Below are positions 10,025-60,644 of a stretch of DNA of 64,000 nt, piece by piece. The position numbers and the translations under genes were made by a program. The stretch lies in NCBI GenBank assembly GCA_002269645.1, contig NIVC01001655.1, forward strand, positions 190,777-254,776, read 5' to 3'. Source of the stretch: Macrostomum lignano (Eukaryota). The notes beneath the pieces were generated by a model, which saw only the letters and a program-made list of their open reading frames with translations, made no database searches and was not told the DNA's origin. Numbering within the stretch: the first letter of the stretch is position 1; each line of letters starts with the position of its first letter.

Positions 10025-13000
10025 ATGGCATCTGTGCTATATCTACCGCGCATGGCATCTCAGAGATATATGTATCTGAAAGACATTCCTGCAAGGGATA
10101 TGTACCATCTGCAAACTGTTGTGAGCACCTCGGAGTCCACTGACCGCTTTGGCGCCTGGTTACTCCTGGCAAATTTTGCTGGTTTCCCTACCGAAACAAT
10201 CAACAGAATCAAAGCCATGGGCAGCAATAGAGTAGAATGGACAAAGACATTCTTTGACAATTGGCTGCAGCGGCTTCCAACTCTGGCCTCGGTTGCTCGC
10301 GCTGTCACCAAAGCATCCCTAGTTGAAGCTGTCAGAATCCTGGAGCCTCTGTGCCACGGCGAGGCTCTGCAGATCCTTCAGCAGTGGCAGCGAATGCAGG
10401 ATGAAGAGCTTCAGCTGCAGTTGCCGCCGCCGTCTCCAACCATGGGTGCACCGAGGCAGCAGCAGCAGCAGCAGCAGCAGCATGGCGAGTTCCAGCAATC
10501 AGCTGACAGTTTCGTTGTGCAGCATCGGGAAAACCCGCACGGCATCGAGGCCAACTCCGCCCCCACTGCGACTGACATGGAGACAGAAAATCAGGTGATT
10601 TGGTGAAATGATGGCCAGTTTCTTTGCACCGTTTTGTTTCCTATTGACGAAGTATTGACGTATTGAGCATTTTTTATTCAATTTCCTATACACGTACTTT
10701 TTCGCTTGCTTTATAAACCTTTCTACGTATTCTTTCTAATTCAGCATCGCAAAAATTTATGCTGGATAATAATCTTAACCGTGCCAACAAACAATTCCTG
10801 ACGACCCCCTCCCCCTTGCTATTCTACGCCAAGCCAACCAGCTGCCTCGCTGAGCTGCCCCAGACTCAGCCTGCTGCTACACCTGCAGCCCCCGTCGCAT
10901 TGAGACAACCGGCGCCCGCCGTCAGAACTCAGGTAAAAATAGCTTTGATCGCTTTTTTTTAATCTCTTGCCTTTCTTCCTCGTCTCCAATGCTTAATTTC
11001 TGTTCTCCTTCTCTGTGCCCAGGATTTAATTTTTTAATACATTTCTAGGAATCTCGGGGATGCTAGTTAAAGTCGTTACTCTGTTCCTTAATTCTTAATA
11101 AGATTCGTAAACGTTTTTTTTCTCTCATAAAATATTCCCAATCTCGAACAGTAGGAATCCCGATCTCTAAATTCTATTTCTGAAAAAATATTGGTATCGA
11201 TTTAATGTCTAAAAAGTCACATCCAATTTTTAAGAACCCTGATACACTTTCAAAGAATCCGTGATACACTTTCCAAGAATCCCTGATACACTTTCCAAGA
11301 ATCCCTGATACACTTTCCAAGAATCCGTGATACACTTTCCAAGAATCCCTCATACACTTTCCACGAATCCATGGAATCCATGATACACTTTTCAAGAATC
11401 CGTGATAGTCTTTCCAAGAATCCCTGATGCACTTTCCAAGAACTCCTGATACATTTTCCAAGAATCCCTGAATACATTTTCCAAGAACTCCAGATATATT
11501 TTCCAAGAAATTCAATCAAACTTCTAGGAAACCGGATAATTTCTAAGAATCATTTTTTCAATTCTAAGAAACCAGAGCCAACTTAAACAAAAGAATCCCT
11601 AATCTCCGAACTCCAACTCCGCTCACTCAGCTGCGCATCTCGTGGAGGATGGGCAGTTTCAACCGTCAGCCCGTGCGGCAGCTGCAGCTGGTGACCAACA
11701 CAGATGAGGCTTGGGCGGCCGCCAACCGGCTGCTGAGTTTCCATCGCCAACTCGCCCATCCGCACCTGGCACCGCTGCTTGGTTCGCAAAAGTTCTCTGG
11801 CAGTGTCGATTTGTACTTTCCCGTCTACCAGTGCACTTTAGAGGATGCTTATTGCTGTCGAATTATGACGAAATTTCGATGCCCATTGGACTTCGAGTCC
11901 CGGCTGCGGCTGCTGTTCGGCATCGCCAAGGCGCTGCTGTACCTGCATGGCGGCCAGCAGGCTGGGCAGAGCTTCGTGTTGGGCAACCTGGCTGCCAACT
12001 CTGTGAGTCCCAGTCCGGCCTTCAATTTTTGTAGGATTTAATTTGCTTTACTAAGAATCTCGATCTCTCATTCTAAGAATTTTGATCGCATTTCTAAGAA
12101 TCTTCATCTCATTTCTAAAATTCTGGATTTTTTATTTCAAGGAATCTCAATCTCATTTCGAAAAATATTATCCCGTTTTCTATGAAACCTGATCCCGTTT
12201 CTAAGAAACCCGATCCCATTTATAATAATATCGATCTCATTTCTAAGAATCTTGATCTCATTTCTAAGATTCCTGATTGCATGCTTAAGAACTCCGACCA
12301 TTTTTTAGGAATCCTTATCACTTTCTAGGAATCTAGACATCATTTCTATGAATCCCGAGGCCATTTATCTATTAAGAATCCCACTATGAAATTTTTAGAA
12401 TCGCAATGGGGCGGAGAGTCTGGAGCTCTTGTGCGCTTTATTAGTGATGTGGCGGAGAGTCTGGAGCTCTTGTGCGCTTTATTAGTGATGGGGCGGAGAG
12501 TCTGGAGCTCTTGTGCGCTTTATTAGTGATGGGGCGGAGAGTCTGGAGCTCTTGTGCGCTCCATTAGTGATGGGGCGGAGAGTCTGGAGCTCTTGTGCGC
12601 TTCATTTGTGATGGGGCGGAGGGTCTGGAGCTCTTGTGCGCTCAATTAGTGATGGGGCGGAGGGTCTGGAGCTCTTGTGCGCTTCATTAGTGATGGAGCG
12701 GAGGGTCTGGAGCTCTTGTGCGCTTCATTAGTGATGGAGCGGAGGGTCTGGAGCTCTTGTGCGCTTCATTAGTGATGGGGCGGAGGGTCTGGAGCTCTTG
12801 TGCGCTCAATTAGTGATGGGGCGGAGGGTCTGGAGCTCTTGTGCGCTTCATTAGTGATGGGGCGGAGGGTCTGGAGCTCTTGTGCGCTTCATTAGTGATG
12901 GGGCGGAGGGTCTGGAGCTCTTGTGCGCTCCATTAGTGATGGGGCGGAGAGTCTGGAGCTCTTGTGCGCTTCTTTAGTGATGGGGCGGAGAGTCTGGAGC

Positions 13001-13627
13001 TCTTGTGCGCTTCATTAGTGATGGGGCGGAGGGTCTGGAGCTCTTGTGCGCTCCATTAGTGATGGGGCGGAGGGTCTGGAGCTCTTGTGCGCTCAATTAG
13101 TGATGGGGCGGAGGGTCTGGAGCTCTTGTGCGCTCCATTAGTGATGGGGCGGAGAGTCTGGATTACATTTTCACTACAAAGCCACTGCCGTAACGCCGCA
13201 GGTAATGCTTGACAGTTTTTGGTGTCCAGCCATCTGCGACCTGACGGAACTGCGCGAGGCCGACGCCAACGAGAATTTCTCAGCAGACGTGTCGGCTTTC
13301 AAAACCGTTGCCATGGAGACCCTGACTGGCTGGTCCAGCCGCCAGGACAGGCGCAAATTCAACGAAGCAGTCAACAAAGTGGACGAGCTGCTGACACTGC
13401 AGCCCGATACTCGGGATCAGCTTGTGCTGGATAGCGAGTGCCTGATGCCGGACGAGATGAGGCCAGACGAGACTCAAGTTGATGAGGATGACATCAGCTT
13501 AATGTGCAGGCTCTATCAAAACTTTCTCATCTTGATGCACAAAACAGCTGGCATTGTCAGTATGCAAGACTTGGCAGAGGTTATGAGACAGCATCAGCAC
13601 TTTAACAGAATTTGGTACACGTTCTGA
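10025..13627 (+). CDS. Death-domain plus degenerate kinase domain (IRAK/Pelle-like pseudokinase)
   Basis: Exons 10025-10594, ~10834-10932 (acceptor uncertain), 11631-12002 and 13202-13627; the listed junctions are in phase 0. N-terminus has a death-domain pattern (YLKDIP...WLLLANFAGF...FFDNWLQR.PTLASVARAV...AVRIL). Kinase subdomains: HPHLAPLLG, PLDFESRLRLLFGIAKALLYLH, VLGNLAANS|VMLD, ICDLTELRE, ADVSAFKTVAMETLTG. Confidence 0.75.
11235..11510. repeat. 22-bp intronic minisatellite (GATACACTTTCCAAGAATCCCT)n
   Basis: About 12 tandem copies; explains the spurious ORFs at 11174-11519. Confidence 0.9.
12408..13161. repeat. 41-bp intronic minisatellite (ATTAGTGATGGGGCGGAGRGTCTGGAGCTCTTGTGCGCTYY)n, about 18 copies
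   Basis: Period of 41 (TGGAGCTC at 12421, 12462, ...); head-to-tail with no spacers. Confidence 0.95.
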
Positions 13628-24624: not shown

Positions 24625-32733
<8,109 letters not shown>

Positions 32734-43000: not shown

Positions 43001-44334
43001 TTGAAGCGGCCATTTGTCGATGAATTTCTTCATCGAGTCGGTCAGCTGTTCGAGTGCGTCCTGTTCACTGCCAGTATGGGAAAGGTGAGAGAAGTCGAAG
43101 GCTTTAATTAACTAGATTCCGTTAGCGTGGCTTTAAATTCTACTTATATAAAAGTACATTTTCTACTTTTAGTACGCCGACCCCGTGTGCGACGCTCTGG
43201 ATCCGAACGGTTCCATTCATCATCGACTGTTTCGCGAGGCCTGCGTTTACCATTGCGACAGCTACGTGAAAGATTTGGCCACTCTGGGCAGGCCCGTTGA
43301 TCGATGCTTCATCATGGACAATTCGCCAGCCTCCTACATGTTCAATGTGGACAATGCGGTACGTGAACACGAGAGAATCCTCGTTGAAGGGATTTGTGTA
43401 GATTGGGTGTAGGGGAATCTTGAGTGATTTGCGTTCGGAAATTCCCGTGATTTGCGTAGGTAGATAAGGGAATCCCAACTAATTTGCGTAGGAGTGTAGG
43501 AAATCCCAAGTGATTTGTTTAGGGGACATAGGGGAATCCCAAGTGATTTGTGTAGGTGGGCTGCAGGGGAATCCCAAGTGATTTGTGTAGTGGGTGTAGG
43601 AGAATCCCAAGTGATTTGCGTAGGTGGGGTGTAGGGAAATCCCAAGTGATTTATGTAGGCTGATGGAGTAGAATCCCAAGTGATTTGTGTAGGTGGGGTG
43701 TAGGGGAATCCCAAGTGATTGTGTAGGTGTGGTGTAGGGGAATCCCAAGGGATTTGTGTAGGCTGATGGAGGGGAATCCCAAGTGATTTGTGTAGGTGGG
43801 ATGTAGGGGAATCCCAAGTGATTTGTGTAGGTGGGGTGTAGGGGAATCCCAAGTGATTGTGTAGGTGTGGTGTAGGGGAATCCCAAGGGATTTGTGTAGG
43901 CTGATGGAGGGGAATCCCAAGTGATTTGTGTAGGGAGTGTAGGGGAATCCCAGTGATTTGTGTAGGTGGGGTGTAGGGAATCCCAAGTGATTTGTGTAGG
44001 TGGGATGTAGGGGAATCCCAAGTGATTTGTGTAGGTGGGATGTAGGGGAATCCCAAGTCATTTGTGTAAAGGGGGTGTTCCTTAGGCTAATGCTAAGGGG
44101 AACTGCCTTTAATTCCTGTGGTCCTGCGTCCCTCCGCAGATCCATGTCAACACCTGGACAGGCGAGCCTGATGACACGGAGCTTCGCGATCTGATTCCGT
44201 ACTTGGATCGTCTGGCCAGTTCCGACTCGGTTGCGGAGTTCTTGCGCAACAATCCTTCGCCAACTGGCGCCCCAGTTTCTATGGCCCAATTTGCTGTTGC
44301 CATGCGGATGCATTCTTTTTCGAGTGAATCCTAG
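40044..44334 (+). CDS. CTDSP: CTD small phosphatase (SCP/NIF family, HAD DLDET motif)
   Basis: Exons 40044-40296, 41990-42315, 42935-43084, 43173-43358, 44140-44334. [10 protein letters not shown]; LFCC; [15 protein letters not shown]; [12 protein letters not shown]; [18 protein letters not shown]; RLFREAC; YVKDL..LGR; IMDNSPASY; [10 protein letters not shown]. Confidence 0.93.
43395..44065. repeat. ~35-bp minisatellite (GTAGGGGAATCCCAAGTGATTTGTGTAGGTGGGGT)n in the last CTDSP intron
   Basis: About 18 variant copies. Confidence 0.92.
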
Positions 44335-44680: not shown

Positions 44681-45662
44681 TCCATGCAACAAATAATATC
44701 TTAGTGCACTTAACAACAATCTACAATTAATAGTTCATCTTTGAATTAACAGTGTTCTGCATCATCAAAGCAAAGTCTATTATTAGTAAGCTCAAGACCC
44801 TGATATAATTTAGTGTTACTAAAATCCACCTGTAAGATCACTTCTGTAGAAGAGGAACCAGATTCGAGACAAATATAAATGCCAAAATATTCAGTGCTGC
44901 AAATCGCTTTATTAAGTATTTTTTAAGCTTCATACTTCACTTAGTTTTACATTTTTTACTAATTTGGCCAAGTATTTCAAGTTTTTTTTATAAATATTCA
45001 TACCACTGAAATAGTATGAGTTAGGTTAGTAATAAACTGCTTCAAGGGATTAATCATTATGTCGGCCTTGAGTTATAAAATTAGCTATCGCGTCTTCCAG
45101 ATGTATTCCACTTTGCAAACCCTTCATTTCTTTGTTTTGAAATTGCGGCTCTATTTTTGTGTAAAATATGTTTCATAAATATTCTATTAACCAAATTTGA
45201 TGTACCCTAGCTTTCTTCTTTATCAATGCTCATTAATAAATCTTGTATTTTCTGGCCAGGATCTTTGCTATTTGATAAAGTTTAGACTGAGTTTTGAGTT
45301 TGATTGTGTAAATTTTTTGTCAATATATTTAATCTATGTTTTTTGATTGTTTAAGAATTGGAAAAAAAGCAAAAATAATTTGTTGTTTGTTAATATCTTC
45401 ATCATTATTTACATATAAATAACGATAATGTTTAGTGAGACAATCAACAAGGTTCGATTCCCTTGAGCACGCGAATTGGCCTGGGATAGAGTACACGCCT
45501 GACGTTTAGAAAGCCAGGGCCGCTGTACACTCCCTGTTGTGAACTTTCGCCACGGTGCCGACAACTTGTACAACTGTAGTCAGCTGATTTGGGACAAAAA
45601 ATCTCATAATGTTAGCTTTCGTCTTTTCTTCAGTCAAAGTGCAACAAAAAGCTTCTAAACAA

Positions 45663-46565
45663 ATGAAAGGCGACCCGGATGTTACCAGCTGCGCCGATGG
45701 CGGCGGCAGCTCAGCTAGTGCCCCGAGAACGCAGCAGAGTTGCCCAGGATGCGACCTGCTGCGACAAGAGAACGGCGTCTTGGCCGCCAAGCTGGAACAG
45801 TCCAGGCGTGAGGCGGCCAATTACAGCAGCGCGTCCAACGAATTACAGAGCAGAAATCTTCAACTGTCCATGGAAGTTGCGGAGCTGCAGTGCCGTCTGC
45901 GCACAGCCCAGCAGCGTCTGTTGAGCGTCGCCAGCGTAGCCCAGAGCATGGCAACGCAAGGCCAGTTGCTGTCGACGCTGTTGAACGATAGCACGGATTC
46001 GCATCGGTCTGACTGTCCGACCTCGACAGACCAGCAGCAGGTTAGCGGCAGTCGTGGAATAGTTCTAGCTCCAGAGCTTACCGCTAGGGAAGACGTCCTG
46101 ACCATCAGTGACGACAACAACAACACGGAATATCAGCAGCTGCTGGATGTTGAAATTGTTTCGCCTCCAACTGGCGGATGCTCTTCGGCTAACGCGAACG
46201 AGCTGGTTCCGCTGACGCCGGAGTCGCCGGACATCAAAGTGACTATGAACGCCGCCTCGGACATCAAGTCGCTGCTGGACGCCTATCTGGCCGACCGGGT
46301 GGACGCCAATCTTGACAGGCTGGTCAGGCGCATCATCCGAGCCCTGTTCAGCCCCTACGAGCTGGCGCACACCTCCTGGTCTGGCCGGACTACGGTGAAC
46401 GGCGCGAATCGACCGGAGGCTGATCCGGCTAAAAAGTTGGCTTTGATCAACTTTCTTAGAAATACTGGCGTGCCTTGCGATATTTCTCAGCTCTCCCGCT
46501 GCTATCGTTGCATCAGCTGCCTGCAACGGCGCACAGCTCGAGCTCATGCTAGCAAAGGAAACTAG
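45663..46565 (+). CDS. Coiled-coil plus BEN-domain-like protein, 300 aa, single coding exon
   Basis: ATG at 45663 follows an acceptor ttcttcag|. Cys-x2-Cys then a heptad region. The C-terminus RLVRRIIRALFSPYELAHTSWSG...ADPAKKLALINFL fits the BEN pattern. Confidence 0.6.
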   Translation: MKGDPDVTSCADGGGSSASAPRTQQSCPGCDLLRQENGVLAAKLEQSRREAANYSSASNELQSRNLQLSMEVAELQCRLRTAQQRLLSVASVAQSMATQGQLLSTLLNDSTDSHRSDCPTSTDQQQVSGSRGIVLAPELTAREDVLTISDDNNNTEYQQLLDVEIVSPPTGGCSSANANELVPLTPESPDIKVTMNAASDIKSLLDAYLADRVDANLDRLVRRIIRALFSPYELAHTSWSGRTTVNGANRPEADPAKKLALINFLRNTGVPCDISQLSRCYRCISCLQRRTARAHASKGN

Positions 46566-46827: not shown

Positions 46828-47183
46828 CCAGTTAATTAGGCGACAGGTTGACTCGGTGACAACCAATTCAGTGACTTTGGCTTTGGCTTCCAAAAAAACG
46901 GTATACTCGTCTTAAGTCTGTTGCTTCATTCGACTGGAAGTGCAAGCAGTAGAAAAAATGCACTCGCTCCGAGTCCGAGACTCCAAGGGGGCGTACACGC
47001 ACCTCTTTGAAAACGTGTTATTCAGCATGATTAAAACAAAATTACCTTACTTGAATGGCAAAGACTAGCAATATTTTAAATTTTAACGAGAGTCGTATAT
47101 AGCTTTCTATATACGACATTATATAAACTTCAGTATTCGCCGAATCGACTGTCGCCGAACTGACTTGTCGCCGAATTAACTGG
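46828..47183. mobile_element. Possible MITE with imperfect ~18-bp TIR
   Basis: CCAGTTAATTAGGCGACA versus TGTCGCCGAATTAACTGG; no clear TSD. Confidence 0.45.
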
Positions 47184-48237
47184 AAGCCATTTTTGGTATG
47201 CTTTACCTTTCGCTTTTTATGATGTTAAGAGAAAAACATTATTTTCAAAATTTTGCGATAAATTTGATGTTTAATATACTAGTGCTAAAGTTATTTTTTA
47301 TAGTCGCCACTTCATTATTACAACTTCATCATGTTATCCTTGCGTAGAAAGCTTAATTGAGCTGCATTTTGCTTAATAAGAAATTTTTTGCTTTTCTAAA
47401 AAGTCACTGCATTCTTTTACTAAACATTGCCTTGTAACTTTCAAGCAACTTATGAAACTTTCAACTTTGTGAATTTTTGAAACGAAAGGGCTTCTATTTG
47501 TTTTGAAATGCATGTTTTGAAGTACAGCTAATACAGCCTAGGGTGTGTGTGTGCGTTTGAGTTTCTTTTACGTTTTCCGAATCGTAATTCTTGTTATTTA
47601 TTTATAGCTCGAAGCTTAATAGAAAAAAATATTGCAATAATTACAGGGCTGTGGGGGGGGGCAGCGCTGATGGCGATCCTGCCCAACTTCCGCTGACTCC
47701 TGTGCACATGCACAATGTGAGAATCGATTGGTCTTTTAAAACTTTGCTTGTCTGCTTGTCCTTTATAGTCTATGGCTCAAAGACTAGGCTGGACGCAGCT
47801 AGGCCCTTCGTATTCAGCGTAGGCAGGATTCTCACTTTGGATGGCTTTTTATCACTTTGCTTGTCCTTTATTGTCTATGGCCCATAGACTAAGGCTGCAC
47901 GCAGCCAGGCCCTTCGCAGTCAGCGTAGGCAGGATTCTCACTTTGGATGGCTTTATTCTCAGTTAGGCTGACAAAACCAATAGTTTTATATTGATATTAT
48001 AAACCGATATTAATAGATGCGTACGCTCCGTTAAGCAGACACCAGACTCCTAGGATTTGGTGATATCTAATTGTGTAAAATTTAAATTTATCGCCATCAT
48101 CAAGCACATTGTTGAGTGAAAAAAAATGCAGTTTGGATAAATTCAATTCAATTACAAAAGAAAAATATTTGGGTCAATTTGACTTTCAGAAATTTTCACT
48201 GACCCTCTTACAGACGTGTTGGCAGCATCCAGAGAAT

Positions 48238-49383
48238 ATGGATTACAAAGAAATTTTAATCCGCCTGTTCAATCTTAACATTGATAACAATGAGTCCACA
48301 GACAGCATCGAAGAGGTTGGCGGCGAGATGACGGGAGACACCGGATTCCTCAGCTTCAGGCGAAGGCTCAAGATTAAGAAAGGTGATTCGATGAAGCGCG
48401 TTTTTCTTAAATTTAACGATACAAGCCGAACAGACCTCGGTGACCTGAAGCAGCTCAGTGAGGTGGCCAATGCTCGCGAGTGCCTGTTCTACGGCACCTT
48501 CGCACCCTTGCTGGAGCGGACTGCCTCTCAGATGGGCTTGGGAAGCGTCGGCCTGCCCACCGTCCACCTGGAGATGGTGCTGCCCACAGGAACTCTCATT
48601 GTGATGGAGGATCTCGGCGAGGCTGGCTTCGAGCTGGCTCCAGCTAAAATGAACGTCGCTGAAGCTCGCTGCGTGCTGAGCAGTCTGGCTCGAGTCCAGG
48701 CAGCGTTCTTGCTGACGAAAGCTCGACTGGGCAGTCCGGCTTCGGGTCTGTTCGGACCGCAGTCGCCTCTGTCCGGCGGTTTCAAATCGACTGATGTTGC
48801 TGGTTTCGACTTTGCCGAAATGCTGCCTGGCTGCTTTGAAGCGTTTGTTCGCGAGTTTCCAAAGTATTTGAAGTGCGAGAAGCGTGTGGCCGCAATTAAT
48901 TCGTACCTTAATGACGACTTTGTTGCTAAAGCTCAGAGGTACATGAAGACGAATGTGACAGAGAAGGAGGGGATCGGGGTGACACACTGCGATCTTTGGT
49001 ACAACAACTGCATGCTGAGTAGGGACTCTAGCGGGCATCCGGTGGCGTGTCGCATTATTGACTGGCAAGTTTTTGGCATCGGCTCCCTAGCTCACGATTT
49101 CGGGCTGCTGTGGCTGTCGAGTATCGATAACTCCATCGTTATTGAGCAGTTTTTTCCATTCGTGAAATATTATTATGACACTATCCGGCGGTTTTTTGGC
49201 GACTCAAGTGTTCAAGTCGACGAGTTTCCGGTCTCTCTAGAGCGAATGAAACAGCTAGCCGTCGAGTCGGTGCTGGATGCCATCATCATGACTGTTGTAT
49301 CGGTTGAAATTCTGCCTGCAATTGCCAAACCAGACAACTGGCTAGCAAATATGGCTGACTTGATCCAGTGCTTCAAGTTATAA
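48238..49383 (+). CDS. EcKinase/choline-kinase-like small-molecule kinase, copy 1 (381 aa, intronless)
   Basis: RECLFY; IVMEDL; LSSLARVQA; Brenner motif THCDLWYNNCM; IIDWQ; DFG.L.LSS. Confidence 0.85.
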   Translation: MDYKEILIRLFNLNIDNNESTDSIEEVGGEMTGDTGFLSFRRRLKIKKGDSMKRVFLKFNDTSRTDLGDLKQLSEVANARECLFYGTFAPLLERTASQMGLGSVGLPTVHLEMVLPTGTLIVMEDLGEAGFELAPAKMNVAEARCVLSSLARVQAAFLLTKARLGSPASGLFGPQSPLSGGFKSTDVAGFDFAEMLPGCFEAFVREFPKYLKCEKRVAAINSYLNDDFVAKAQRYMKTNVTEKEGIGVTHCDLWYNNCMLSRDSSGHPVACRIIDWQVFGIGSLAHDFGLLWLSSIDNSIVIEQFFPFVKYYYDTIRRFFGDSSVQVDEFPVSLERMKQLAVESVLDAIIMTVVSVEILPAIAKPDNWLANMADLIQCFKL

Positions 49384-50588
49384 TTAGCTGGATTTCTTGT
49401 CGTAACTTTATAAAGTCTTCTATATGAGTAGCTAATCTGGTGAAATGAATTAAAAGAAAAACTTGATTTAGCTATTCAATTTCTTTTAGATTTTTAGATT
49501 GTATTTTAAACACACTGTGATTCTTGTGTGTATTGTCAGCGTTTTTTCTACTGTTTTAACGACTAACCGAAATTTACGCCCTTTCACACTTTTTTACGGT
49601 ATGGAACGATGTGCCATGAACAATTCCCCAAGAGTGAATAAGCGGGGACTTGTGAGGGTCCTAGCTATTGACTGTATTTAGTGTTTACTGTCGGTAGGTA
49701 TAGTAAAGGTTTTTGTTTTATTCTTTAATATTGCATAGCTAGTCTTTCTTTTTTACTTCATAAAATTCTTGGCTTCATTTCATCCCATAGCAGTCTGCGA
49801 AGGTGTAACTTTGACAAGGACCTTGACAAGTCCAAAGATCCTTGGACTTTCATTGCTGTAGTCTTTTAACTATAGACCAAAAATTTTAACTGTCTGGAAC
49901 TAAAGCCGCGGAATTTCACATAATCGTGCCTAGTGGTGTGGCTCGGCGCTCTGATGTGCCAGCGGCTCGATTTCAAGTGCAGTCACATTAATATTGAAGC
50001 TAAATATTGGAATCTCGGCTTGGCTCTGCTCGGGAAATTAACGCCCTTGAGGGCCAACCTCAATGGCACAGTGAAGTGTACATGCCTAACGATAAAATAA
50101 AGTTAGGGCCGCTGTACACTCCTGTGCGTGTGCCTGTCCGGAATCGGCAGTAATCGCCAGTTGTGTTGTTGACAATGTCGCTTAAAGTACATGTGCGCCA
50201 GGGTGCATGCAGCCCCTGCTTGTCGGTACTGATTCTGCGTCTGTGCATGTTTTTTAGTATTTAGTTCCTTAAATATCCTTGTTTAGTTTGATTTGAATTA
50301 TGAATCAATATTGTTGGCTTGATAGTTTGTGAAAATGATTTTTCATTGATATCTAAACGAGTACGTAAAACAAACAGCAGATCAGAGCTCATCACGTGGC
50401 TTCTGAAAGCATATCTTGCAAAAGTTGTCAACAAAGCAGAGAGAGACAAAAATTTTGGTCCCTAAAGTCAAACAAAATGTATACTTCACCATTAACATAC
50501 TCAAGTGCTCATAAACTTGCTCTTCTTATTTTTCAGTGTGTTCAGAAAACAGCTTATGGGATTTTCTATTCAATTAGAACTGAACTAA

Positions 50589-51722
50589 ATGGATTTTAAA
50601 TCGATATTGACACGACTTTTCAACCTCGGATATGATGGATTAGAAGACAGCATCGAAGAAATTGGCGGTGAGATGACTGGAGACACCGGATTCCTCAGCT
50701 TCAGGCGCCGACTGAAGATTAAAAAGGGTGATGCGGTCAGAAAGGTTTTTCTCAAATTCAGTGACAAAAGCCGACCAGATCTTGGCCAACTGAAAGAGCT
50801 CAGTGAGCAGGTGAACGAACGAGAGTGCCTGTTCTACGGCACCTTCGCACCCTTGCTGGAGCGGACTGCCTCTCAGTTGGGCTTGGGAAGCATCGGCCTG
50901 CCTACCGTCCACCTGGAGATGGTGCTGCCTACAGGAACTCTCATTGTGATGGAGGATCTCGGCGAGGCTGGCTTCGAGCTGGCTCCAGCTAAAATGAACG
51001 TTGCTGAAGCTCGCTGCGTGTTGAGCAGTCTGGCTCGAGTTCAGGCGGCGTTCTGGCTGACGAAAGCTCGACTGGGCAGTCCGGCTTCGGGTCTGTTCGG
51101 TCCTCAATCGCCTCTGTCGGACGGTTTCAGATCGACTGATGCTGCTGGTGTTGGCTTTGATGGCATGTTGTCAGGCTGCTTTGAAAGATTTCGTAGCAAT
51201 TTTCCAACGTACCTGAAGTGCGAGAAGCGTGTTGCTATCATTAATGCTTACCTTGACGACAGCTTTCTTGAAAAATCTCGGGAAGTCATGAACTCTAGCA
51301 AAAGTGAGCAAGAAACCATAGGTGTTACTCACTCTGAGCTGTGATACAACAATTTTATGATCAGCAGGGACTCCTGTGGGAATCCAGTCCAATGCTGTCT
51401 CATCGACTGGCAGTTCTTCGGCATCGGCTGGCTGACCTACGACCTGGGCCCGCTCTGGATATCCAGCATTGACAATGCCATCGTCACGGAAGAGTTTCTG
51501 CCTTGCGTGGACTTTTATCATCACGCTGTCCAGTCCGCTTACGAGGGCGCGATAGGGGAGAAGTTCCCAGTCTCCCAGGAGCAGATGAGGGAGCAGGCTG
51601 TGAAGTCGTTGGTCTACGGCGTCGCTTGGATTGTCCTTCAGGCGGATTTTCTCGGCGTGTTCGTGCGTATCGACAATATTCTGGCTAATGTTGCTGACCT
51701 AATTGCTTTCTTCAAGCTGTGA
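50589..51722 (+). pseudogene. EcKinase-like copy 2 with an in-frame TGA in the catalytic loop
   Basis: 1134-nt colinear paralog. It reads HSEL*YNNFM (TGA at 51342-51344) where the others have H(C/S)DLWYNNCM. Confidence 0.82.
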
Positions 51723-53064
51723 CGTAACACTGAGTTACGTTAGGACACGTGACTTTGTAAATAATTTTTATGATTACAATTTATCGCTCTTCAATTTGCA
51801 ATTGTTCCAATCCGCTTTTAATCTTGTAGTTGCTACTTTAAAGTACTGATTTAATTTGATTTTGGTTGTCACTCTTTGTAGAATTTTGTCATGGTCTTAA
51901 ATGCTTCATTTTTAATACGTTGCATTGCGATATACATATGTCACGATTATTGACGTAGTGGCTATGGCTATGACCCTTAAAAGGGCCGTTTTGACGAGAG
52001 TTGCCGTAAGTCGTAGTCCCAAAATGAATCGAAGTCAATTCTTATAAAGCGGATTGTGTAGCGGAGCACTTGGCGATAAAGGCAGGAAACTGCCGTGGTT
52101 GTTTATTGTCGAGATCAATATTAAAACTCGGTTACTAATGTCAATGCAAGCTTATAGCGTTCTGGGCACTGGCGGCTGCAACAATGGTTTTGAAAGCAAT
52201 AGAATATGAAGTCAGTGGCAGACGAAGGATTCGATGGCGACGCAGTGTGATGAGCAATGGCGATGAGCACGGTGAAGGCAGTGAGTAGCAGTAGGTAGGC
52301 AGATGAGTAGTGGCGAGATTGGCGTTAGCCGTGGCAGCACACAGTGAAGTAGTGTGTAAACAGGCTGGCCCAGACAGAGGGGCCGTGGCGAGAGATAAGG
52401 AGGCTCGAGGCAGCCAGACAAGAGAAGGAAAACAAGACGCCAAGAGGAGAGACAAGCCTAAAAGCCTAGAAGCCTAGAAGCCTAGAAGCCTAGAAGTGAG
52501 GAGGCCCTCAGACCGCCAGGCAGGGGTTGATAAAGGAACGCAGAGGGGGGTAGCGCGAAGCACGAGCGGTTTTCATTGGCTGGCTAAAGAACTTAAAATT
52601 ATCGATCGTGCCAGTTTTCTACGGTCGCATGAAAGGATAGCAAAACGCGCAGTGAATTAGCAATAGGCACAGATTCGTTGGGCACTACTACAAGTAAACG
52701 TTAAAATAAACGATTGGAGAAATTGTAGAGGAGCTACAGTCCAACGGCCCCTCTCGGGACCACTTTAAACTGGCAACGTCACAACATACAATATGTAGAA
52801 TCCTATTATTACTGTTATTATTAGTTGGTCGTTCGCATCGATTTATGCCTTTGTAGCGAAATTAGCTTGCCCGATGAAACGGTAAACAGGCCAAGAAGCG
52901 TCCCAGAGTCACTTGCGTAGCCACATAAAGGATCGTTACTGGTAAAATTGGTAAAATAGGAAAGAAGTGACTCTAGACGACTCTGGAACGACGAGAGGTC
53001 ACGGTAAAAGTCGCCCAAAAATCGTTGAAACTTGAGGTGTTTTTATTGTCTTCGGCTCTGAAGC

Positions 53065-53777
53065 GTGTTGGCCTGGTGGTCAACACGCAGAAGACCGTCG
53101 TGCTATGCGTGCCGGACGACACCGAGGCTACAATCTTCTGCCGAGGCGCTGACGGACAGGCGAGTGAGCTTCCAAGATGTCAGCAGTTCGTCTACCTCGG
53201 CGGTCTGGTTCCCGACGTCCGCGAGGATCTGCGGCGTCGCCGTGGACTTGCTTGGGCTGCCTTTCGTTCTATAAGGTCAGTCCTGCAGTCCGAGGCCCTA
53301 CCGGACCGCCAGAGGGCGGCGCTGTTCCAGGCGGTGATCGAGACCGTCCTGTTATACAACGCCGAGACCTGGACGCTGACAGACTCGCTCGAGGCTCAAG
53401 TCGACGCGGCGCACGCTGGCCTGCTGCGCGCCGCCTTCAAGATCGGCAACGAGCGAGTCACCAACACGGCGCTCTATCATCGCGCCGGCCTGGCCCGTCC
53501 TAGCGATCTGCTGCGCCGTCGGCAACTCCAGCTAGCAGGCCACGTCATCCGCGCCGAGGCCTACTGTCCGGAGCCGGTGCAGGAGGTGCTGCTACTTACG
53601 TTGCAGGCACCCTACCGGCGGGGACAGGCGAGGACTCGGCGCTACGTCGACTGTCTGCTGGCTGACGCCGGCGCCCCGAACTCTGCCGGCGGTGCGGCTT
53701 TTGTTCGCGCCCAAGCTTTGAAGCGCGCCATCTGACGCTGCTTTTGTGAACTGGCAGCGTACTCTGTTGTTGTTGTT
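53065..53777 (+). mobile_element. 5'-truncated RTE-like LINE with (TTG)n tail
   Basis: GLVVNTQKT, FVYLG, ETVLLYNAETWTL, RRQLQLAGHV.R (RT domains 6-7 and C-terminus). Tail TGTTGTTGTTGTT. Candidate 10-bp TSD GCTCTGAAGC at 53055-53064 and 53778-53787. Confidence 0.88.
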
Positions 53778-54510
53778 GCTCTGAAGCTAATCTGAGCAAA
53801 CGCAAGTGACTCTGAGGCGCTTCTTCTAGATTGGCTCTGGGGCCGCAGAGTCGTATCTGAGGCGTGCTATCGAGTCGCTTTAGAATTACTGAGTTGCGTC
53901 TAAATTACATCCGCGTTACTTTATAAATGAATTAGAATCGTTTTATTTAGAGTAGCACAACTCTATTCAGTCTACTTGAGTTAGTGGATAGTTAAGCACA
54001 AGCACAACGACTCTTGGATGACTTTCTTTCGACTCTTTTACAGTTTTATACAACTCCCATGATGCGCTCGTGACTCAAAAGTTACCCAAAAGTCGTTAGT
54101 CACTGTACGGTAACGGTACAATAACGTTTTTAACGGGTTGATATTTTGCCAAATCATGCTCACTAGCTAAGACTCACGTAGAGAAGCTCTGAACGCCCTT
54201 TGACGACCGAAACCATAACCTTAGCTATAGGATTTTCGCAGCTCGAGTATACTTTAACTTCGACTGCAGATACATGCAGACACGACCAAGTCTTTGCCTG
54301 GCTGTTTGCCCTGTGTGGCTCGAATCAATATCAAAGTTTTTCTTATCTCAGCCTATATTTGTATTTTTACTTGTGCTTCGAGCGCGGCACAGCCGATCTA
54401 CTAGCTAGTAACAACGACAAGGGTTCAAACTTCGAAGTTTTTCGTTAAAAAACGAGCTAAAGCAGTGTACACGACAGACCAGAAAACTCTGCAATTCGAG
54501 AACTGACAAG

Positions 54511-55644
54511 ATGGACTTCAAACCTATTTTGCAGCGACTGTTCAACTTGGCACAGAATGAAACACACAGCAGTATTGAAGAAGTTGGCGAAGAGATGACT
54601 GGTGAAACGGGGTTCCTCAGCTTCAGGCGCAAGCTCAGGATCAAAAAAGGATACTCAACAATCAACATCTTTCTCAAGTTCAGCGACACCAGCCGGCAGG
54701 AGCTCGGAGAGTTGAAAGAATTCAGCGATCATTTTTGTCCGCGAGAGTGCCTGTTCTACGGCACCTTCGCACCCTTGCTGGAGCGGACTGCCTCTCAGCT
54801 GGGCTTGGGAAGCGTCGGCCTGCCCACCGTCCACCTGGAGATGGTGCTGCCCACAGGAACTCTCATTGTGATGGAGGATCTCGGCGAGGCTGGCTTCGAG
54901 CTGGCTCCAGCCACAATGAACGTTGCTGAAGCTCGCTGCGTGTTGAGCAGTCTGGCTCGAGTCCAGGCGGCGTTCTGGCTGACGAAAGCTCGACTGGGCA
55001 GTCCGGCTTCGGGTCTGTTCGGTCCGGAGTCGCCTTTTAGCGACCCTTTGAAATCCCTTACTGGCACTGCTGTCAACTTTGACGCCTTCCTCGAACAGGG
55101 CTTTGAAGAGTTCCGTCACAAGTTTGACAATTATCTAAAATGCGAGAAGCGAGCAGCCATTGTCAATGCCTACTTAGAGGATGGATTTCTCGAGAAAACT
55201 CGAAAGGTCTTGAAAGTAAATCAGGAGAAGAGCGAAGTCGTAGGCGTGATTCACTGTGACTTGTGGTACAATAACTGCATGATCAGCAGGGACTCCCGAG
55301 GTCAGCCAATTGAGTGTCGTCTCATCGACTGGCAGTTCTTCGGCATCGGCTGGCTGACCTACGACCTGGGCCCGCTCTGGATATCCAGCATTGACAATGC
55401 CATCGTCACGCAAGAGTTCCTGCCTTGCGTGGACTTTTATCATCACGCTGTCCAGTCCGCGTACGAGAGCGCGATAGGGGAGAAGTTCCCAGTCTCCCAG
55501 GAGCAGATGAGGCAACAGGCTGTGCAGTCGTTGGTCTACGGCATCGGTTGGGTCATACTGTCTGCGGATACGCTGTGGGCGTTCCAGTCGGTTAGCAACG
55601 TGCTTGCCAACATAGCCGACGTGATCGAACACTTCAAGCTCTGA
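54511..55644 (+). CDS. EcKinase-like copy 3 (377 aa, intronless)
   Basis: IHCDLWYNNCM and LIDWQ intact. Confidence 0.87.
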   Translation: MDFKPILQRLFNLAQNETHSSIEEVGEEMTGETGFLSFRRKLRIKKGYSTINIFLKFSDTSRQELGELKEFSDHFCPRECLFYGTFAPLLERTASQLGLGSVGLPTVHLEMVLPTGTLIVMEDLGEAGFELAPATMNVAEARCVLSSLARVQAAFWLTKARLGSPASGLFGPESPFSDPLKSLTGTAVNFDAFLEQGFEEFRHKFDNYLKCEKRAAIVNAYLEDGFLEKTRKVLKVNQEKSEVVGVIHCDLWYNNCMISRDSRGQPIECRLIDWQFFGIGWLTYDLGPLWISSIDNAIVTQEFLPCVDFYHHAVQSAYESAIGEKFPVSQEQMRQQAVQSLVYGIGWVILSADTLWAFQSVSNVLANIADVIEHFKL

Positions 55645-56239
55645 TGTCTGCGTCATGTTAACCGGCTTCGATAAGTTAAAACTTTATTAAAATCTAAAAT
55701 TAGATCTTTATTTTCTATGTTAGCTTAAGTTACAGTTAGAAGTTGTAATTGAATCACAAGCGATTCGAAATGAGCATGCGACAAAGTTTCCTATGACATT
55801 TTTCCATACGAGCGTACTTTTGACTAAAAGAGCGCCAATTTTATTTATTCATTTACGCGTTTTAGGCTATCTATGAATAAAACAAATAAAAGAAAAGAAA
55901 AAACAAAGCCTCATGTTTTGATTTAATGAGCTTTTTCCAGTGGTAATTAAAACATTTTCTAAGTTGCTTCCAAATGTTTTATTGATTTTCACGACCAGAT
56001 AATTTTGATTTTGTCAGTTAAGTTGATCATGGCTTTACTTTTTATGGGGCCAGGGGTTGTAGCTTATAGATGGTTAGAGCGTCGTGGGTAGAAGTAAATA
56101 ACTAGAAGAGACGGGACTATGATATTGCTCATGTAATTCTATTTTCTAGTTTTTCGTTTCTGCTGCTAAAAGAAGCAATAGGAGCTTCCTGCTCAAGCGC
56201 AGGGATGCTGACTAACGACTGAGCACAGTCGATCGCGAT

Positions 56240-57373
56240 CTACAGACCGAAATGCTCAATCAAATCAGCGACATTGTTGAGTACATTGTCAATCCGACGA
56301 AGCACTGGAATCATCTCGGCGAACGTGACCAGCCAGGTGATGCCCCAGTTGAGCGACTGGACAGCCTGCTGCCTTATCGTCTCCTTGGAGACCGGGAACT
56401 CTTGCTGCAGCCCCGTCTTGTACAGAGATCGAATGGTCTCGTCGTACAACTCCACACACGGCAGGTATTGCTCCACGGCGATGGCGTTGTCAATGCTGGA
56501 TATCCAGAACGGCCCCAGGTCGAAGGTCAGCCGACCAATTCCGAACACCTGCCAGTCGATCAGGCGGCACTCGACAGGCTGTCCGCTGGCGTCTCTGCTG
56601 AGCATGCAGTTGTTGTACCACAGGTCCGAGTGCGTTATGCCCACTACTTCACGCTCCTCTTGGCCCGACTTGATCACCTGCTGAGCCTTCTTAAGATAGT
56701 CCCTATCCAGGTAGCCGTTGATGATGGCTATTCGCTTGTCGCACGTCATGTACTTTGCGAATTCGCGGCGGAACAACTCGAAACCGGCCGGTAGGAGCTC
56801 GTCCATGCTCTTCTTGGTTGCGGACAGGGCAAAGAAACCGTCGGACAGAGGCGACTGCGGTCCGAACAGACCCGAAGCCGGACTGCCCAGTCGAGCTTTC
56901 GTCAGCCAGAACGCCGCCTGAACTCGAGCCAGACTGCTAAGCACGCAGCGAGCTTCAGCAACGTTCATTGTGGCTGGAGCCAGCTCGAAGCCAGCCTCGC
57001 CGAGATCCTCCATCACAATGAGAGTTCCTGTAGGCAGCACCATCTCCAGGTGGACTGTGGGCAGGCCGATGCTTCCCAAGCCCAGCTGAGAGGCAGTCCG
57101 CTCCAGCAAGGGTGCGAAGGTGCCGTAGAACAAGCACTCTCTCGGACAGAAGCAGTCCATCAATTCCTTCAGCTCGCCCGAGTCCTGTCGGGTTGTGTCG
57201 CTGAACTTGAGAAACACATTGATGGTTGAGTCGCCCTTCTTAACCTTGAGCCGGCGCCGGTAGCTGAGGAACCCAGTTTCTCCCGTCATCTCCTCGCCCG
57301 CCGACGCGATGCACCGGTCGGCCTCGTCCTCAGTCAGGCTGAACAGTCGAGACAAAATCGCCCTAAAGTCCAT
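56240..57373 (-). CDS. EcKinase-like copy 4 (377 aa from MDF; alternative ATG at 57391), inverted
   Basis: THSDLWYNNCM and LIDWQ intact; convergent with copy 3. Confidence 0.87.
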   Translation of the reverse strand: MDFRAILSRLFSLTEDEADRCIASAGEEMTGETGFLSYRRRLKVKKGDSTINVFLKFSDTTRQDSGELKELMDCFCPRECLFYGTFAPLLERTASQLGLGSIGLPTVHLEMVLPTGTLIVMEDLGEAGFELAPATMNVAEARCVLSSLARVQAAFWLTKARLGSPASGLFGPQSPLSDGFFALSATKKSMDELLPAGFELFRREFAKYMTCDKRIAIINGYLDRDYLKKAQQVIKSGQEEREVVGITHSDLWYNNCMLSRDASGQPVECRLIDWQVFGIGRLTFDLGPFWISSIDNAIAVEQYLPCVELYDETIRSLYKTGLQQEFPVSKETIRQQAVQSLNWGITWLVTFAEMIPVLRRIDNVLNNVADLIEHFGL

Positions 57374-58519
57374 TTGTCCGTTTGTTTCCATTTTTTCCTT
57401 TCCTTTCACGCAGTTTTATTCACGGTAGAACTGCCTATATAGACAGCAGGGTTTTGCGAAGTGTTTGTACACTGAGTGTTTTTCTCTCCCAGGGTAGAGC
57501 GACCGAGTGCAGAGTTTACCCAGAAACTGTCTGTCACACCCCAGCTAAAAGTTTGGCCGTCATTTTGATAGCAAAGGGTAGAGAATAAATTGGGGTTGAG
57601 CGGCAGGAGAGTACATTCATTATTGAGAGTGCACTCGGATAAGATCTCTAACCCCCATACCAATGAACTGCGAGCTGCATGTACGAGTAAGATGTTTGTT
57701 GTTAAACGAGGGTCCTAGTGGGCTGGCCAAACCACTGAGAATAGTGGGGTGGGTCCTTAGAGTTTATGTGCTACTAACAGTAGCGCTATATGGACTTTCG
57801 TTCAATTCCTACAAAGACGGTCTAGTTTTTTATAATTTAACCATTATCTATCTCGTACTAGCTATCTCAACTACATTCAGCTATCTCAACTACATTTAGC
57901 TCCCTTAGTGGCTCCTCCCTTGAGGTGCAAATGTACCTCCATGGCCCGCTCCCACCATGACCCTTCCATCGGTTTTCGATTTCGCTATGACCTTCAATCT
58001 ATTAAAATCTTTATTTCGCAAATTTTTAGTCAGCCCAAGTACACAGCAGCCTTCAGTCCAGGACTACCAAGTGCTGCTGTGTGGTTAAAAAATTGCGTGA
58101 ACCGAAAAAGTTAAAAGTGAGTGCATTGCAACACGAACACTCCAGCCTCTCAGCTACATCAGCTTTAGTGCTGCTGCTATATAGCGTTTTAGTGTTTCGC
58201 TTCTTTTCCTCGAAAGAAGGACGAGAAAATGTTGAACGAAGCGTTGCACTTCAGGGTTCGTCAGCTGTTGCTGCAATTAAGTTTTTAATATTCGGGGATT
58301 TCTCGAGCGTTCGAAACATTTTCCCCGGAGATGTCCGCAGGGGGAAGTTCGAAATGAATAAGCCGAGGAAAAGTTCAAGTGCTGGGGCAGAGGTCAGTTC
58401 TAACGAGGGGAAATGCTCACGACTCGACTTTGAATAATCGCGTCCTTATTGTAACAAAATCTGTTCTATTATTTGAGTTTACGAATGTTAAATATTTCTA
58501 TATTAATTTCCCAAGATTT

Positions 58520-59970
58520 GCATAGAATTCTCTTGATCTGCATAGATTCTCTAGATCTGCAAAGGTTTCTATAGATCTGCATAAAAGTCTCTAGATCTGA
58601 ATAGATTTCCCTAGATCTGCATGGGTTTCTATAGATCTGCATAGGTTTCTCTAGATCTGCATAGATTCTCTAGATCTGCGTAGGTTTCTCTAGATCTGCA
58701 TAGATTCTCTAGATCTGCATAGATTCTCAAGATCTGCATAGATTCTCTAGATCTGCATAGATTTCTCTAGATCTGCATAGATTCTCTAGATCTGTGTAGG
58801 TTTTTCTATGCATAGATTCTCTAGATCTGTGTAGGTTTCTATGCATAGATTCTCTAGATCTGCATAGATTCTCAAGATCTGCATAGATTTCTCTAGATCT
58901 GCATAGATTTCTCTAGATCTGCAAAGGTTTCTATAGATCTGCAAAGGTTTCTATAGATCTGCATAGAAGTCTCTAGATCTGAATAGATTTCCCTAAATCT
59001 GCATGGGTTTCTATAGATCTACATAGGTTTCTCTAGATCTGCATAGATTTCTCTAGATCTGCATAGATTCTCTAGATCTGTGTAGGTTTCTCTAGATCTG
59101 CATAGGTTTCTCTAGATCTGCATAGATTTCTCTAGATCTGCATAGATTCTCTAGATCTGCATAGATTTCTTTAGATCTGCAAAGGTTTCTATAGATCTGC
59201 ATAGAAGTCTCTAGATCTGAATAGATTTCCCTAAATCTGCATGGCTTTCTATAGATCTACATAGGTTTCTCTAGATCTGCATAGATTTCTCTAGATCTGC
59301 ATAGATTCTCTAGATCTGTGTAGGTTTCTCTAGATCTGCATAGGTTTCTCTAGATCTGCATAGATTTCTCTAGATCTGCATAGATTCTCTAGATCTGCAT
59401 AGATTTCTTTAGATCTGCAAAGGTTTCTATAGATCTGCATAGAAGTCTCTAGATCTGAATAGATTTCCCTAGATCTGCATGGGTTTCTATAGATCTGCAT
59501 AGGTTTCTCTAGATCTGCATAGATTCTCTAGATCTGCGTAGGTTTCTCTAGATCTGCATAGATTTCTCTAGATCTGCAAAGGTTTCTATAGATCTGCATA
59601 GGTTTCTCTAGATCTGCATAGATTTCCCTAGATCTGCATGGGTTTCTATAGATCTGCATAGGTTTCTCTAGATCTGCATAGATTCTCTAGATCTGCGTAG
59701 GTTTCTCTAGATCTGCATAGATTTCTCTAGATCTGCAAATGTTTCTATAGATCTGCATAGGTTTCTCTAGATCTGCATAGATTTCTCTAGATCTGCAAAG
59801 GTTTCTATAGATCTGCATAGGTTTCTCTAGATCTGCATAGATTTCTCTAGATCTGCAAAGGTTTCTATAGATCTGCATAGAAGTCTCTAGATCTGAATAG
59901 ATTTCCCTAGATCTGCATAGATTTCTATAGATCTGCATAGGTTTCTCTAGATCTCCACAGATTTCTAGCT
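58520..59970. repeat. ~20-bp satellite (ATAGATTTCTCTAGATCTGC)n with 238-bp higher-order repeat
   Basis: About 70 monomers. The rare variant GAAGTCTC recurs at ~58966, 59204 and 59442. Confidence 0.93.
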
Positions 59971-60644
59971 GCATTGATCTGTTATGGATTTCTCAGTCAT
60001 CGGCTGTCTTGCAGCTAAAACATATTCTTATACCAATGGAATCTGTCTAGTGTGTGACATATGGCGTTTTTTATCCCTTAAGTGACTCTAGTCTAGATGT
60101 GTATCGAGACTGTGGGGGGTCTGAGTGATCCCCTAGCCATATAAAACACTCTCCCAAGAAACCGATAAACTGACTGCCATGCAATGAGATAAAAAGCTCT
60201 CTGACTGCACTGAGCTGCCAGCGAACTGGCAACGGACCATGGCGATACACGCGGATTTCCACACTTTACACAGCAACTTAAAGACAAGGAGTTGCCCTGC
60301 TGCGATGCAATATATAGCCCATGGTTTACACGCCGGCTCTGCGGCTGCGGACTGAGGCTGAAGACAGAACGGCCAACCGCTTTATGATGGAGAAAGTGCT
60401 GGAAGCTGCCCACTCCCCCCCCCAAGTTTCTGGCCCGTGTAGCCGACCGAAAATCAATTGAGGCCGGGATCGATTTAATGCGGGGCGACGAGGCGCGGGA
60501 CGGATAGGGGAGACCGCGGCTGCTGCTGGCGAGGGCTGGGAGAACCCGGCCAGAATCCATAATTTCAATCACTGGGCTCTGTTTTTGCTGCGACGCTCAG
60601 GCCTTTTAAAATGGCATTTTTAGCGCTTTGAACCTGCGATCGGC

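Follow-up and report, generated by a model that had tools for sequence, protein, structure and literature searches.

Gene conversion between paralogous genes is known from classical cases such as the globin, opsin, CYP21A2/CYP21A1P, RHD/RHCE and SIGLEC11/16 genes. Interlocus conversion with mosaic divergence in tandem paralogs has been described for the three HMA4 copies of Arabidopsis halleri (bioRxiv 10.1101/2025.10.29.685298), and gene conversion among paralogs is documented in Caenorhabditis (PMC3966223). Here we describe an array of four EcKinase/CHK-like genes in the last 64 kb of contig NIVC01001655.1 of the Macrostomum lignano assembly Mlig_3_7; this whole stretch of DNA is referred to as the window. 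Judged from its sequence, the array very likely consists of old paralogs that were overwritten by recurrent interlocus gene conversion in one island present in all four copies and in a further tract present in copies 2 and 3. As in the known cases, the tracts are short and non-reciprocal, the paralogs are linked, homogenised and diverged segments alternate, the effective rate of conversion differs from one part of the gene to another, paralogs have variants in common, trees are incongruent, and inverted as well as damaged copies take part. The locus differs from these cases in its extreme polarity, with a proportion of synonymous differences (pS) of 0.47-0.82 over most of the gene and a single island of ~300 bp in all four copies, and in its host, a neopolyploid flatworm in which three probable subgenome versions of the array serve as internal replicates.

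The array proteins share with the EcKL family (PF02958; PMC10859841, PMC9387500) the Pfam assignments PF02958, PF07914 and PF01636, the catalytic signature and the choline-kinase/APH-like fold, and the genes show the lineage-specific clustered duplication of their insect and crustacean counterparts. They are at most 31% identical to any protein outside the array, and no substrate can be inferred for them. According to the EcKL literature, the family is essentially an arthropod one (Tetraconata; PMC10859841), and the insect EcKL phylogenomic survey makes no mention of gene conversion (PMC10859841). Our literature search yielded no paper that describes gene conversion in EcKL genes or links it to these M. 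lignano genes.

A common island in four diverged kinase genes

Open reading frames (ORFs) and their translations define four intronless EcKinase/CHK-like genes in the window, three in direct orientation (copies 1-3) and one inverted (copy 4), the latter lying tail-to-tail with copy 3. The genes and the putative conversion tracts are:

48238-49383, plus strand: copy 1 kinase gene, 381 residues from an ATG homologous to that of the other copies, catalytic loop HCDLWYNN intact
50589-51722, plus strand: copy 2 kinase gene, in-frame TGA at 51342-51344, loop HSEL*YNNF
54511-55644, plus strand: copy 3 kinase gene, 377 residues, intact; its protein was used for the structure model
56240-57391, minus strand: copy 4 kinase gene, 383 residues from the ATG at 57391, homologous MDFR start at 57373, loop HSDLWYNN
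48478-48755, plus strand: putative conversion island of copy 1, reaching about 48783 against copy 4
50823-51100, plus strand: putative conversion island of copy 2, reaching about 51118
54745-55022, plus strand: putative conversion island of copy 3, encoding residues 79-171
56862-57139, minus strand: putative conversion island of copy 4, reaching about 56834
51391-51620, plus strand: second putative conversion tract, copy 2 side, common to copies 2 and 3 only
55313-55542, plus strand: second putative conversion tract, copy 3 side, partner of 51391-51620

Within the 278-bp core of the island, any two copies in the window differ at 7-12 bases (7 between copies 1 and 3), compared to 28-42% in the rest of the coding sequence, and the non-coding flanks of the four genes cannot be aligned between paralogs. 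Identity per 50-bp window of a four-way alignment was 92-100% in the core, 46-82% directly after it and 56-74% before it. Near-identity of the four tracts, with seven differences between copies 1 and 3, and an abrupt drop in identity on either side had been put forward in an original prediction for this locus, all coordinates and counts of which were reproduced. The same tracts were found independently by a repeat search, as the direct pairs D13 and D17 and as the inverted pairs I1-I3 (306-464 nt), the latter involving copy 4. Depending on the pair, the island extends over about 294-308 bp (e.g. 48476-48783 vs 57141-56834). Its left edge agrees within about 4-12 bp, and its right edge lies at alignment column ~291 in copy 3 and at columns ~298-306 in the others, copy 3 leaving the island ~10-15 bp earlier at the 3' side. 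Across all copies and all three contigs introduced below, the edges match within about 15 bp.

The second tract begins about 8 bp before the previously noted start (51391/55313 rather than 51399/55321). It starts directly behind the catalytic loop, includes D273/Q275/D285 and ends in the first C-terminal helices, with pS values of 0.00-0.15 between copies 2 and 3. The 222-bp portion described originally (51399-51620 vs 55321-55542) indeed contains 7 differences, and the block between the two tracts of copies 2 and 3, already described as diverged, is 52-78% identical. A run test of the Sawyer/GENECONV type on the four window copies, a check which the original prediction had proposed, detected this tract with a longest concordant run of 39 polymorphic sites vs a maximum of 19 in 2000 column permutations (p ≤ 0.0005). 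Since sites that are identical in all copies are not polymorphic, the run test is insensitive to the four-way core, for which it was supplanted by a test on four-fold degenerate sites and by a classification of fixed and shared differences over 11 copies.

Silent sites in the island and its flanks

pS and the corresponding nonsynonymous proportion, pN, were determined as Nei-Gojobori proportions for the six pairs of window copies. In the core, pS was 0.07-0.11 and pN 0.01-0.02, vs a pS of 0.67-0.82 in the N-terminal flank and 0.47-0.80 in the C-terminal flank. At the protein level, the cores of the copies are distinguished by just 1-4 residues. Synonymous divergence (dS) is therefore not uniform along the genes, and the assertion that the copies have synonymous sites in common within the tract holds. 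In the test on four-fold sites, which was restricted to codons whose first two bases agree in all four copies, the four copies shared the same third base at 48 of 56 core sites vs 7 of 37 flank sites (Fisher p = 9e-11), ruling out amino-acid constraint as the cause of the silent-site identity of the core. Purifying selection alone was rejected both by these pS values and by the conservation among 65 distant homologues, which are 23% identical to copy 3 over the core vs 29% over the catalytic region; silent sites of the catalytic region are saturated between the paralogs despite its stronger conservation in distant homologues. Equally high conservation of the core in distant species, the finding that would have favoured selection according to the original prediction, was thus not observed.

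Three versions of the array

The array is present three times in the same assembly, in the window (W), on contig NIVC01000860.1 (A, with copies A1-A4) and on contig NIVC01002018.1 (B, with copies B1, B3 and B4), amounting to 11 copies in total. Contig B lacks copy 2, of which tblastn revealed no trace there (L004:17056-19849), and B1 is split by a long interspersed nuclear element (LINE). Non-coding identity among W, A and B is 91-98.6% in aligned blocks, mostly 95% or more. M. lignano DV1 is described as having three subgenomes (S, L1 and L2) with a divergence in single-nucleotide polymorphisms of 1.4-2.4% (PMC10733133). W, A and B match this description and are probably versions from different subgenomes.

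Orthologous copies on the three contigs differ by 1.6% (1.61%) outside the core and by 2.2% (2.16%) inside, whereas paralogs differ by 28-42% outside and by only 2.2-3.7% inside. The orthologous divergence in the core is thus not below that of the rest of the gene, which argues against a constraint on the core at the nucleotide level. When the columns of the 11-copy alignment were classified, the flanks showed 434 fixed paralog-specific differences vs none in the core, where 12 variants were common to different paralogs and 9 were private. Separate trees for core and flanks, which had been suggested earlier, proved incongruent. Neighbour-joining trees of the N-terminal flank, the middle part and the C-terminal end each gave four clean paralog clades, vs a scrambled core tree with the groups B3+A4, W1+A2 and W2+W4+B4. 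In the tree of the second tract, copies 2 and 3 were merged in one clade and A2 was sister to A3.

As a separate observation, the closest pair of contigs changes along the array. It is W-A at copy 1 (8 vs 15-17 differences), A-B at copy 3 (7 vs 14-18 differences) and W-B at copy 4, where the two are nearly identical (1/856). This shift suggests exchange between subgenomes or chimeric scaffolds.

Probable individual conversion events

Two events could be assigned to particular copies. In the core of A4, the base of copy 3 (B3-like) is found at all 10 informative sites (columns 6-224, at least 219 bp), and the flanks of A4 are copy-4-like at 281 of 286 sites. On this evidence, A4 is read as the product of a conversion from copy 3 into the inverted copy 4, later than the split of A from W and B. 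In the second tract, A2 and A3 both carry a 3-bp GGG insertion that is missing from W2, W3 and B3, and they differ from each other at 3 of 225 positions, with 9 differences each for A2-W2 and A3-W3. We read this pattern as an exchange between copies 2 and 3 that is specific to contig A. Because of these two events, exchange appears to have continued after the three versions of the array had separated. Outside the core, pS between orthologous copies is 0.03-0.07, and the pS between paralogs in the core (0.07-0.11) is equal to this or slightly above it, which places the last general homogenisation of the core near the split of the array versions. The claim of recurrent gene conversion, also into the inverted copy, is hence upheld by the collapse of silent-site differences, the shared variants, the incongruent trees and the A4 event.

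The island is also present in copy 2, in which the TGA of the window sits inside the catalytic loop and the catalytic aspartate is replaced by glutamate (Asp250->Glu, D250E) in both the W and the A version. Copy 2 is thus probably inactive or a young pseudogene allele. Its constraint until recently follows from a pN/pS of 0.21 between W2 and A2 outside the core. The state of the gene varies among the contigs: it carries the TGA in the window and is intact on contig A (L001:10001-11137), where the same codon is TGG and the catalytic loop departs from the consensus only by Asp250->Glu.

Protein family and predicted fold

Close database relatives of the array proteins are found in M. lignano only, and precomputed Pfam matches on copy 3 and its syntenic and paralogous gene models are to PF02958 (EcKinase), PF07914 and PF01636. 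PF02958 is also present on syntenic gene models of copy 1, which is 62% identical to copy 3 (tblastn). An exhaustive HMMER scan yielded 110 cluster representatives at E ≤ 0.001. The nearest proteins outside the array come from other CHK-like genes of M. lignano, followed by crustacean and insect proteins, the arthropod matches being 22-28% identical. Alignments with 26 and 14 distant homologues showed K56, E79, H248, N255, D273, Q275 and D285 to be invariant and D250 to be conserved in at least 90%. Copies 1, 3 and 4 keep all of these signature residues, and copy 2 has the D250E replacement. We take the resulting pattern of Lys (β3), αC-Glu, HxDxxxxN and DxQ to be the signature of small-molecule kinases of the choline-kinase/APH type.

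A profile search of a 5.8-billion-protein set returned 19 proteins, which were enough for an AlphaFold2 alignment and too few for a deep conservation analysis. The AlphaFold2 model of copy 3 had a predicted local distance difference test score (pLDDT) of 84 and a predicted template modelling score (pTM) of 0.87. Its top Foldseek matches were PsiK (8zic, 9eto), human choline kinase alpha (2cko, 7nb2) and APH(3')-Ia (4fev), with a probability of 1.00, E-values of about 1e-7 and template modelling (TM) scores of 0.45-0.57; a sequence search of the PDB gave nothing significant (E ≥ 0.35). The model shares with these structures the bilobal architecture and the helical substrate-binding subdomain, but the sequence identity is only 10-15%. 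The label EcKinase-like with a choline-kinase fold, as given in the original prediction, is therefore correct at the level of domain and fold. The link to insect detoxification that accompanied it is not transferable because relatives outside the array are so distant, and the available sequence comparisons do not support orthology to insect EcKLs or an ecdysteroid or detoxification role for the flatworm proteins.

Proposed mechanism and alternative explanations

We propose that all four copies have undergone short-tract, non-reciprocal interlocus conversion at the one island of ~280-306 bp, that copies 2 and 3 alone would have exchanged the second tract of ~230 bp, and that elsewhere the paralogs have diverged to saturation at silent sites. 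Pairing and heteroduplex extension would need near-identical sequence and, with the flanks below the identity threshold, heteroduplexes would form and resolve only inside the island. The island may in this way sustain itself, as conversion would keep the core identical and give it sharp common edges. Purifying selection on the core protein segment (pN ~0.01) would tolerate homogenisation, and selection against overwriting of the diverged parts may sharpen the edges further. The GC content of the core (0.60-0.63 vs 0.44-0.58 elsewhere, or 0.44-0.57 outside the tract of copies 2 and 3) is compatible with GC-biased conversion.

Several points weigh against this explanation. Conversion is read indirectly, from assembled contigs. 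Pilon polishing of Mlig_3_7 drew on short reads and RNA-seq data (PMC5730564). Reads multi-map in the 278-bp tract of the 11 copies, and the assignment of core variants could be partly artefactual; polishing could have touched the pattern of shared variants, perhaps including part of the A4 event, and the measured divergence of the core could be something of an underestimate. Chimeric scaffolds make up about 36% of the assembly length (PMC10733133), which makes it harder to regard W, A and B as clean subgenomes. Biased conversion is not uniformly supported either, as the GC content at third codon positions of copy 4 is higher in the flanks (0.78) than in the core (0.67). Finally, the explanation does not account for the persistence of this particular segment rather than of the better-conserved catalytic segment.

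Unequal crossing-over as the source of homogenisation was rejected. It would homogenise whole repeat units instead of an internal piece of 300 bp, and it cannot act on an inverted copy; the segment from copy 3 to copy 4 remains collinear across the three contigs, which excludes an inversion by crossover. Copy 2 is nearer to copy 1 in its 5' half and nearer to copy 3 in its 3' half, but its origin as a simple crossover hybrid of the two is not supported: duplication by unequal exchange would produce the reverse polarity, and outside the tracts the similarity reaches only about 65-78%.

The position of the island on the model of copy 3, mapped by secondary-structure elements and invariant residues, bears on an explanation by selection, in which a common ATP-binding/hinge module is kept identical, conversions into substrate-determining segments are purged, and a constant/variable array results. 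The core covers the second half of the αC-like helix from Glu79, strands 107-113 and 116-122 (β4-β5), the hinge E122/D123 and helix 138-162, the first helix of the C-lobe. Directly after it follows the most variable block (residues 172-243), a four-helix insertion with a pN of 0.2-0.5 between paralogs and 9% identity in distant homologues, which together with the C-terminal helices should presumably line the substrate pocket, by analogy with APH and choline kinase. The common edges in all copies on three contigs would fit such a design, yet a mechanical identity threshold alone predicts common sharp edges as well. Likewise, pN/pS reaches 0.44-1.47 in residues 173-205, but these values come from 32 codons with near-saturated pS and are no evidence of positive selection. 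The island starts within helix 68-96 and not at a domain boundary, and it leaves out the K56 strand, the catalytic loop (H248-N255) and the Mg-binding D273 and Q275, which are equally scaffold-like and have saturated pS. Moreover, copy 2 also carries the island despite Asp250->Glu (W and A) and the stop codon (W). We consider this modular explanation unlikely. The earlier view of a homogenised scaffold next to diverging substrate-contacting segments is only weakly supported: mapping the variable blocks on a predicted structure, as had been recommended, did place the core at the αC glutamate and the hinge and the most variable block in a helical insertion, but the cut through a helix, the omission of K56, catalytic loop and D273, and the state of copy 2 do not agree with it. 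That the island is a selected shared module, in which an identical ATP-binding/hinge half is combined with a diversifying helical insertion and C-terminal helices, has at most a slender chance and is not needed for the data.

The silent sites of the core could instead be frozen by a constraint on the nucleotides themselves, imposed for example by a structured RNA, an ORF on the antisense strand, a target of small RNAs shared by the copies or a regulatory element. An antisense frame is open through the core in every copy, as is often the case in GC-rich coding DNA. Folding of the antisense strand is slightly more stable than that of shuffled sequences (z = -1.9, 7/200), while the structure of the sense strand is unremarkable (z = -0.8). 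A structured RNA or known RNA family in the core was rejected on these z-scores and for lack of an Rfam match, the Rfam search of 47000-58500 at E ≤ 1 giving only two sub-threshold histone stem-loop matches outside the genes. The cores of copies 3 and 4 are convergent, 97.5% complementary over 278 bp and 1.8 kb apart; read-through transcripts could pair them, and UniProt A0A1I8GQF0 joins copy 4 in sense with copy 3 in antisense. Against a frozen core stand the orthologous copies, which are no more alike there than elsewhere, and the variants shared by paralogs and scrambled against the flank trees, which such a constraint cannot yield; in addition, the tract of copies 2 and 3 has the same signature without the other two copies. 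Nucleotide-level constraint is thus very improbable. Even more speculative than a selected module is a fold-back RNA from read-through of copies 3 and 4 that would give rise to small RNAs co-regulating all four copies, and this is not needed for the data either. An artefact of assembly or polishing, in which the identical tracts would stem from consensus collapse or cross-copy polishing, is made conceivable by the use of Canu with an errorRate of 0.04 and of Pilon with multi-mappable Illumina and RNA-seq reads (PMC5730564) as well as by the hexaploid-like genome and the redundant, partly chimeric assembly (PMC5730564, PMC10733133). However, three contigs that were assembled separately show the same mosaic with the same edges, each copy being anchored by unique flanks with a divergence of 30-40%, and cross-mapping needs cores that are already about 95% or more identical, so that polishing blurs variants but cannot create the island. 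Furthermore, the exact copy 3 protein is also found on a second contig (20-50 kb) in a public collection, and the older, independent gene model A0A1I8GQF0 has the same core peptide. Assembly collapse, named in the original prediction as a possible source of the tracts, found no support, and we regard an artefact as extremely improbable.

With interlocus conversion as the preferred explanation, the locus is a clear-cut if ordinary instance of a well-known process, which involves no new mechanism and will not surprise the specialist. Its value lies in a clean and internally replicated example of segment-limited concerted evolution, in which a ~300-bp island with a silent difference of ~0.08 lies beside saturated sequence and which takes in direct, inverted and probably dead copies; with the three probable subgenome versions, at least one event can be placed after the split of the polyploidisation era. 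For M. lignano genomics, it implies that within such tracts paralog trees and dS dating cannot be trusted, nor can short-read mapping or polishing, and for EcKinase/CHK-like clusters that gene conversion can act there. The finding is silent on what the array enzymes phosphorylate.

Further features of the array and its surroundings

A short patch shared by copies 1 and 2 and a retrotransposon fragment were noted in addition to the tracts above:

48317-48365, plus strand: short patch common to copies 1 and 2, 49 bp, 92% identical, partner 50662-50710, covering the nucleotide-loop motif EMTGDTGFLSFRR
53025-53735, plus strand: fragment of a non-LTR retrotransposon reverse transcriptase (C-terminal part), identified from the ORF translation, in the spacer between copies 2 and 3

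The patch has a pS of 0.25 and a run-test p of 0.016, and it may be an older small tract or simply reflect amino-acid constraint. The spacer between copies 2 and 3 is ~1 kb longer in the window than on contig A, where the retrotransposon fragment has no alignment; the fragment is outside the conversion system.

UniProt A0A1I8GQF0 is an older gene model (57169-54655, minus strand) in which copy 4 in sense is fused to antisense translations of copy 3, namely the minus-strand ORFs 55174-55656 and 54655-55119. The fusion is probably an annotation artefact, although the model raises the question of minus-strand read-through from copy 4 into copy 3. A4 (L001:15966-14832) loses its frame at alignment column 200, shortly before the core, through one additional base in a G run (GGG->GGGG). 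The frameshift may be genuine or stem from a homopolymer error of PacBio sequencing.

An ORF for 318 residues without assigned function (45609-46565, plus strand) directly precedes the array and is conserved with ~97% nucleotide identity on contigs A and B, and a NIF/CTD-phosphatase-like gene (PF03031) was located at about 40.0-44.3 kb of the window by synteny with contig B (L004). Long tandem-repeat arrays occupy 12283-13320, 28942-30990, 43525-44069 and 58449-59974, with units of 41 bp, 8/16 bp, ~34 bp and ~20 bp, in agreement with the reported repeat-rich genome of M. lignano. The 20-bp array lies directly downstream of copy 4, and the ~34-bp array lies within or beside the region of the NIF gene.

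On contig B, copy 1 (L004:10718-16603, NIVC01002018.1) is interrupted by an insertion of ~5.9 kb that is flanked by a 14-bp direct duplication (GGTACTTGAAGACG). Long ORFs in the insert are intact and encode an ORF1-like protein, an AP-endonuclease and a reverse transcriptase whose tail resembles RNase H; the insert is apparently a full-length, possibly recent non-LTR retrotransposon. In GenBank, the split B1 is annotated as a single gene with a 7-kb 'intron'.

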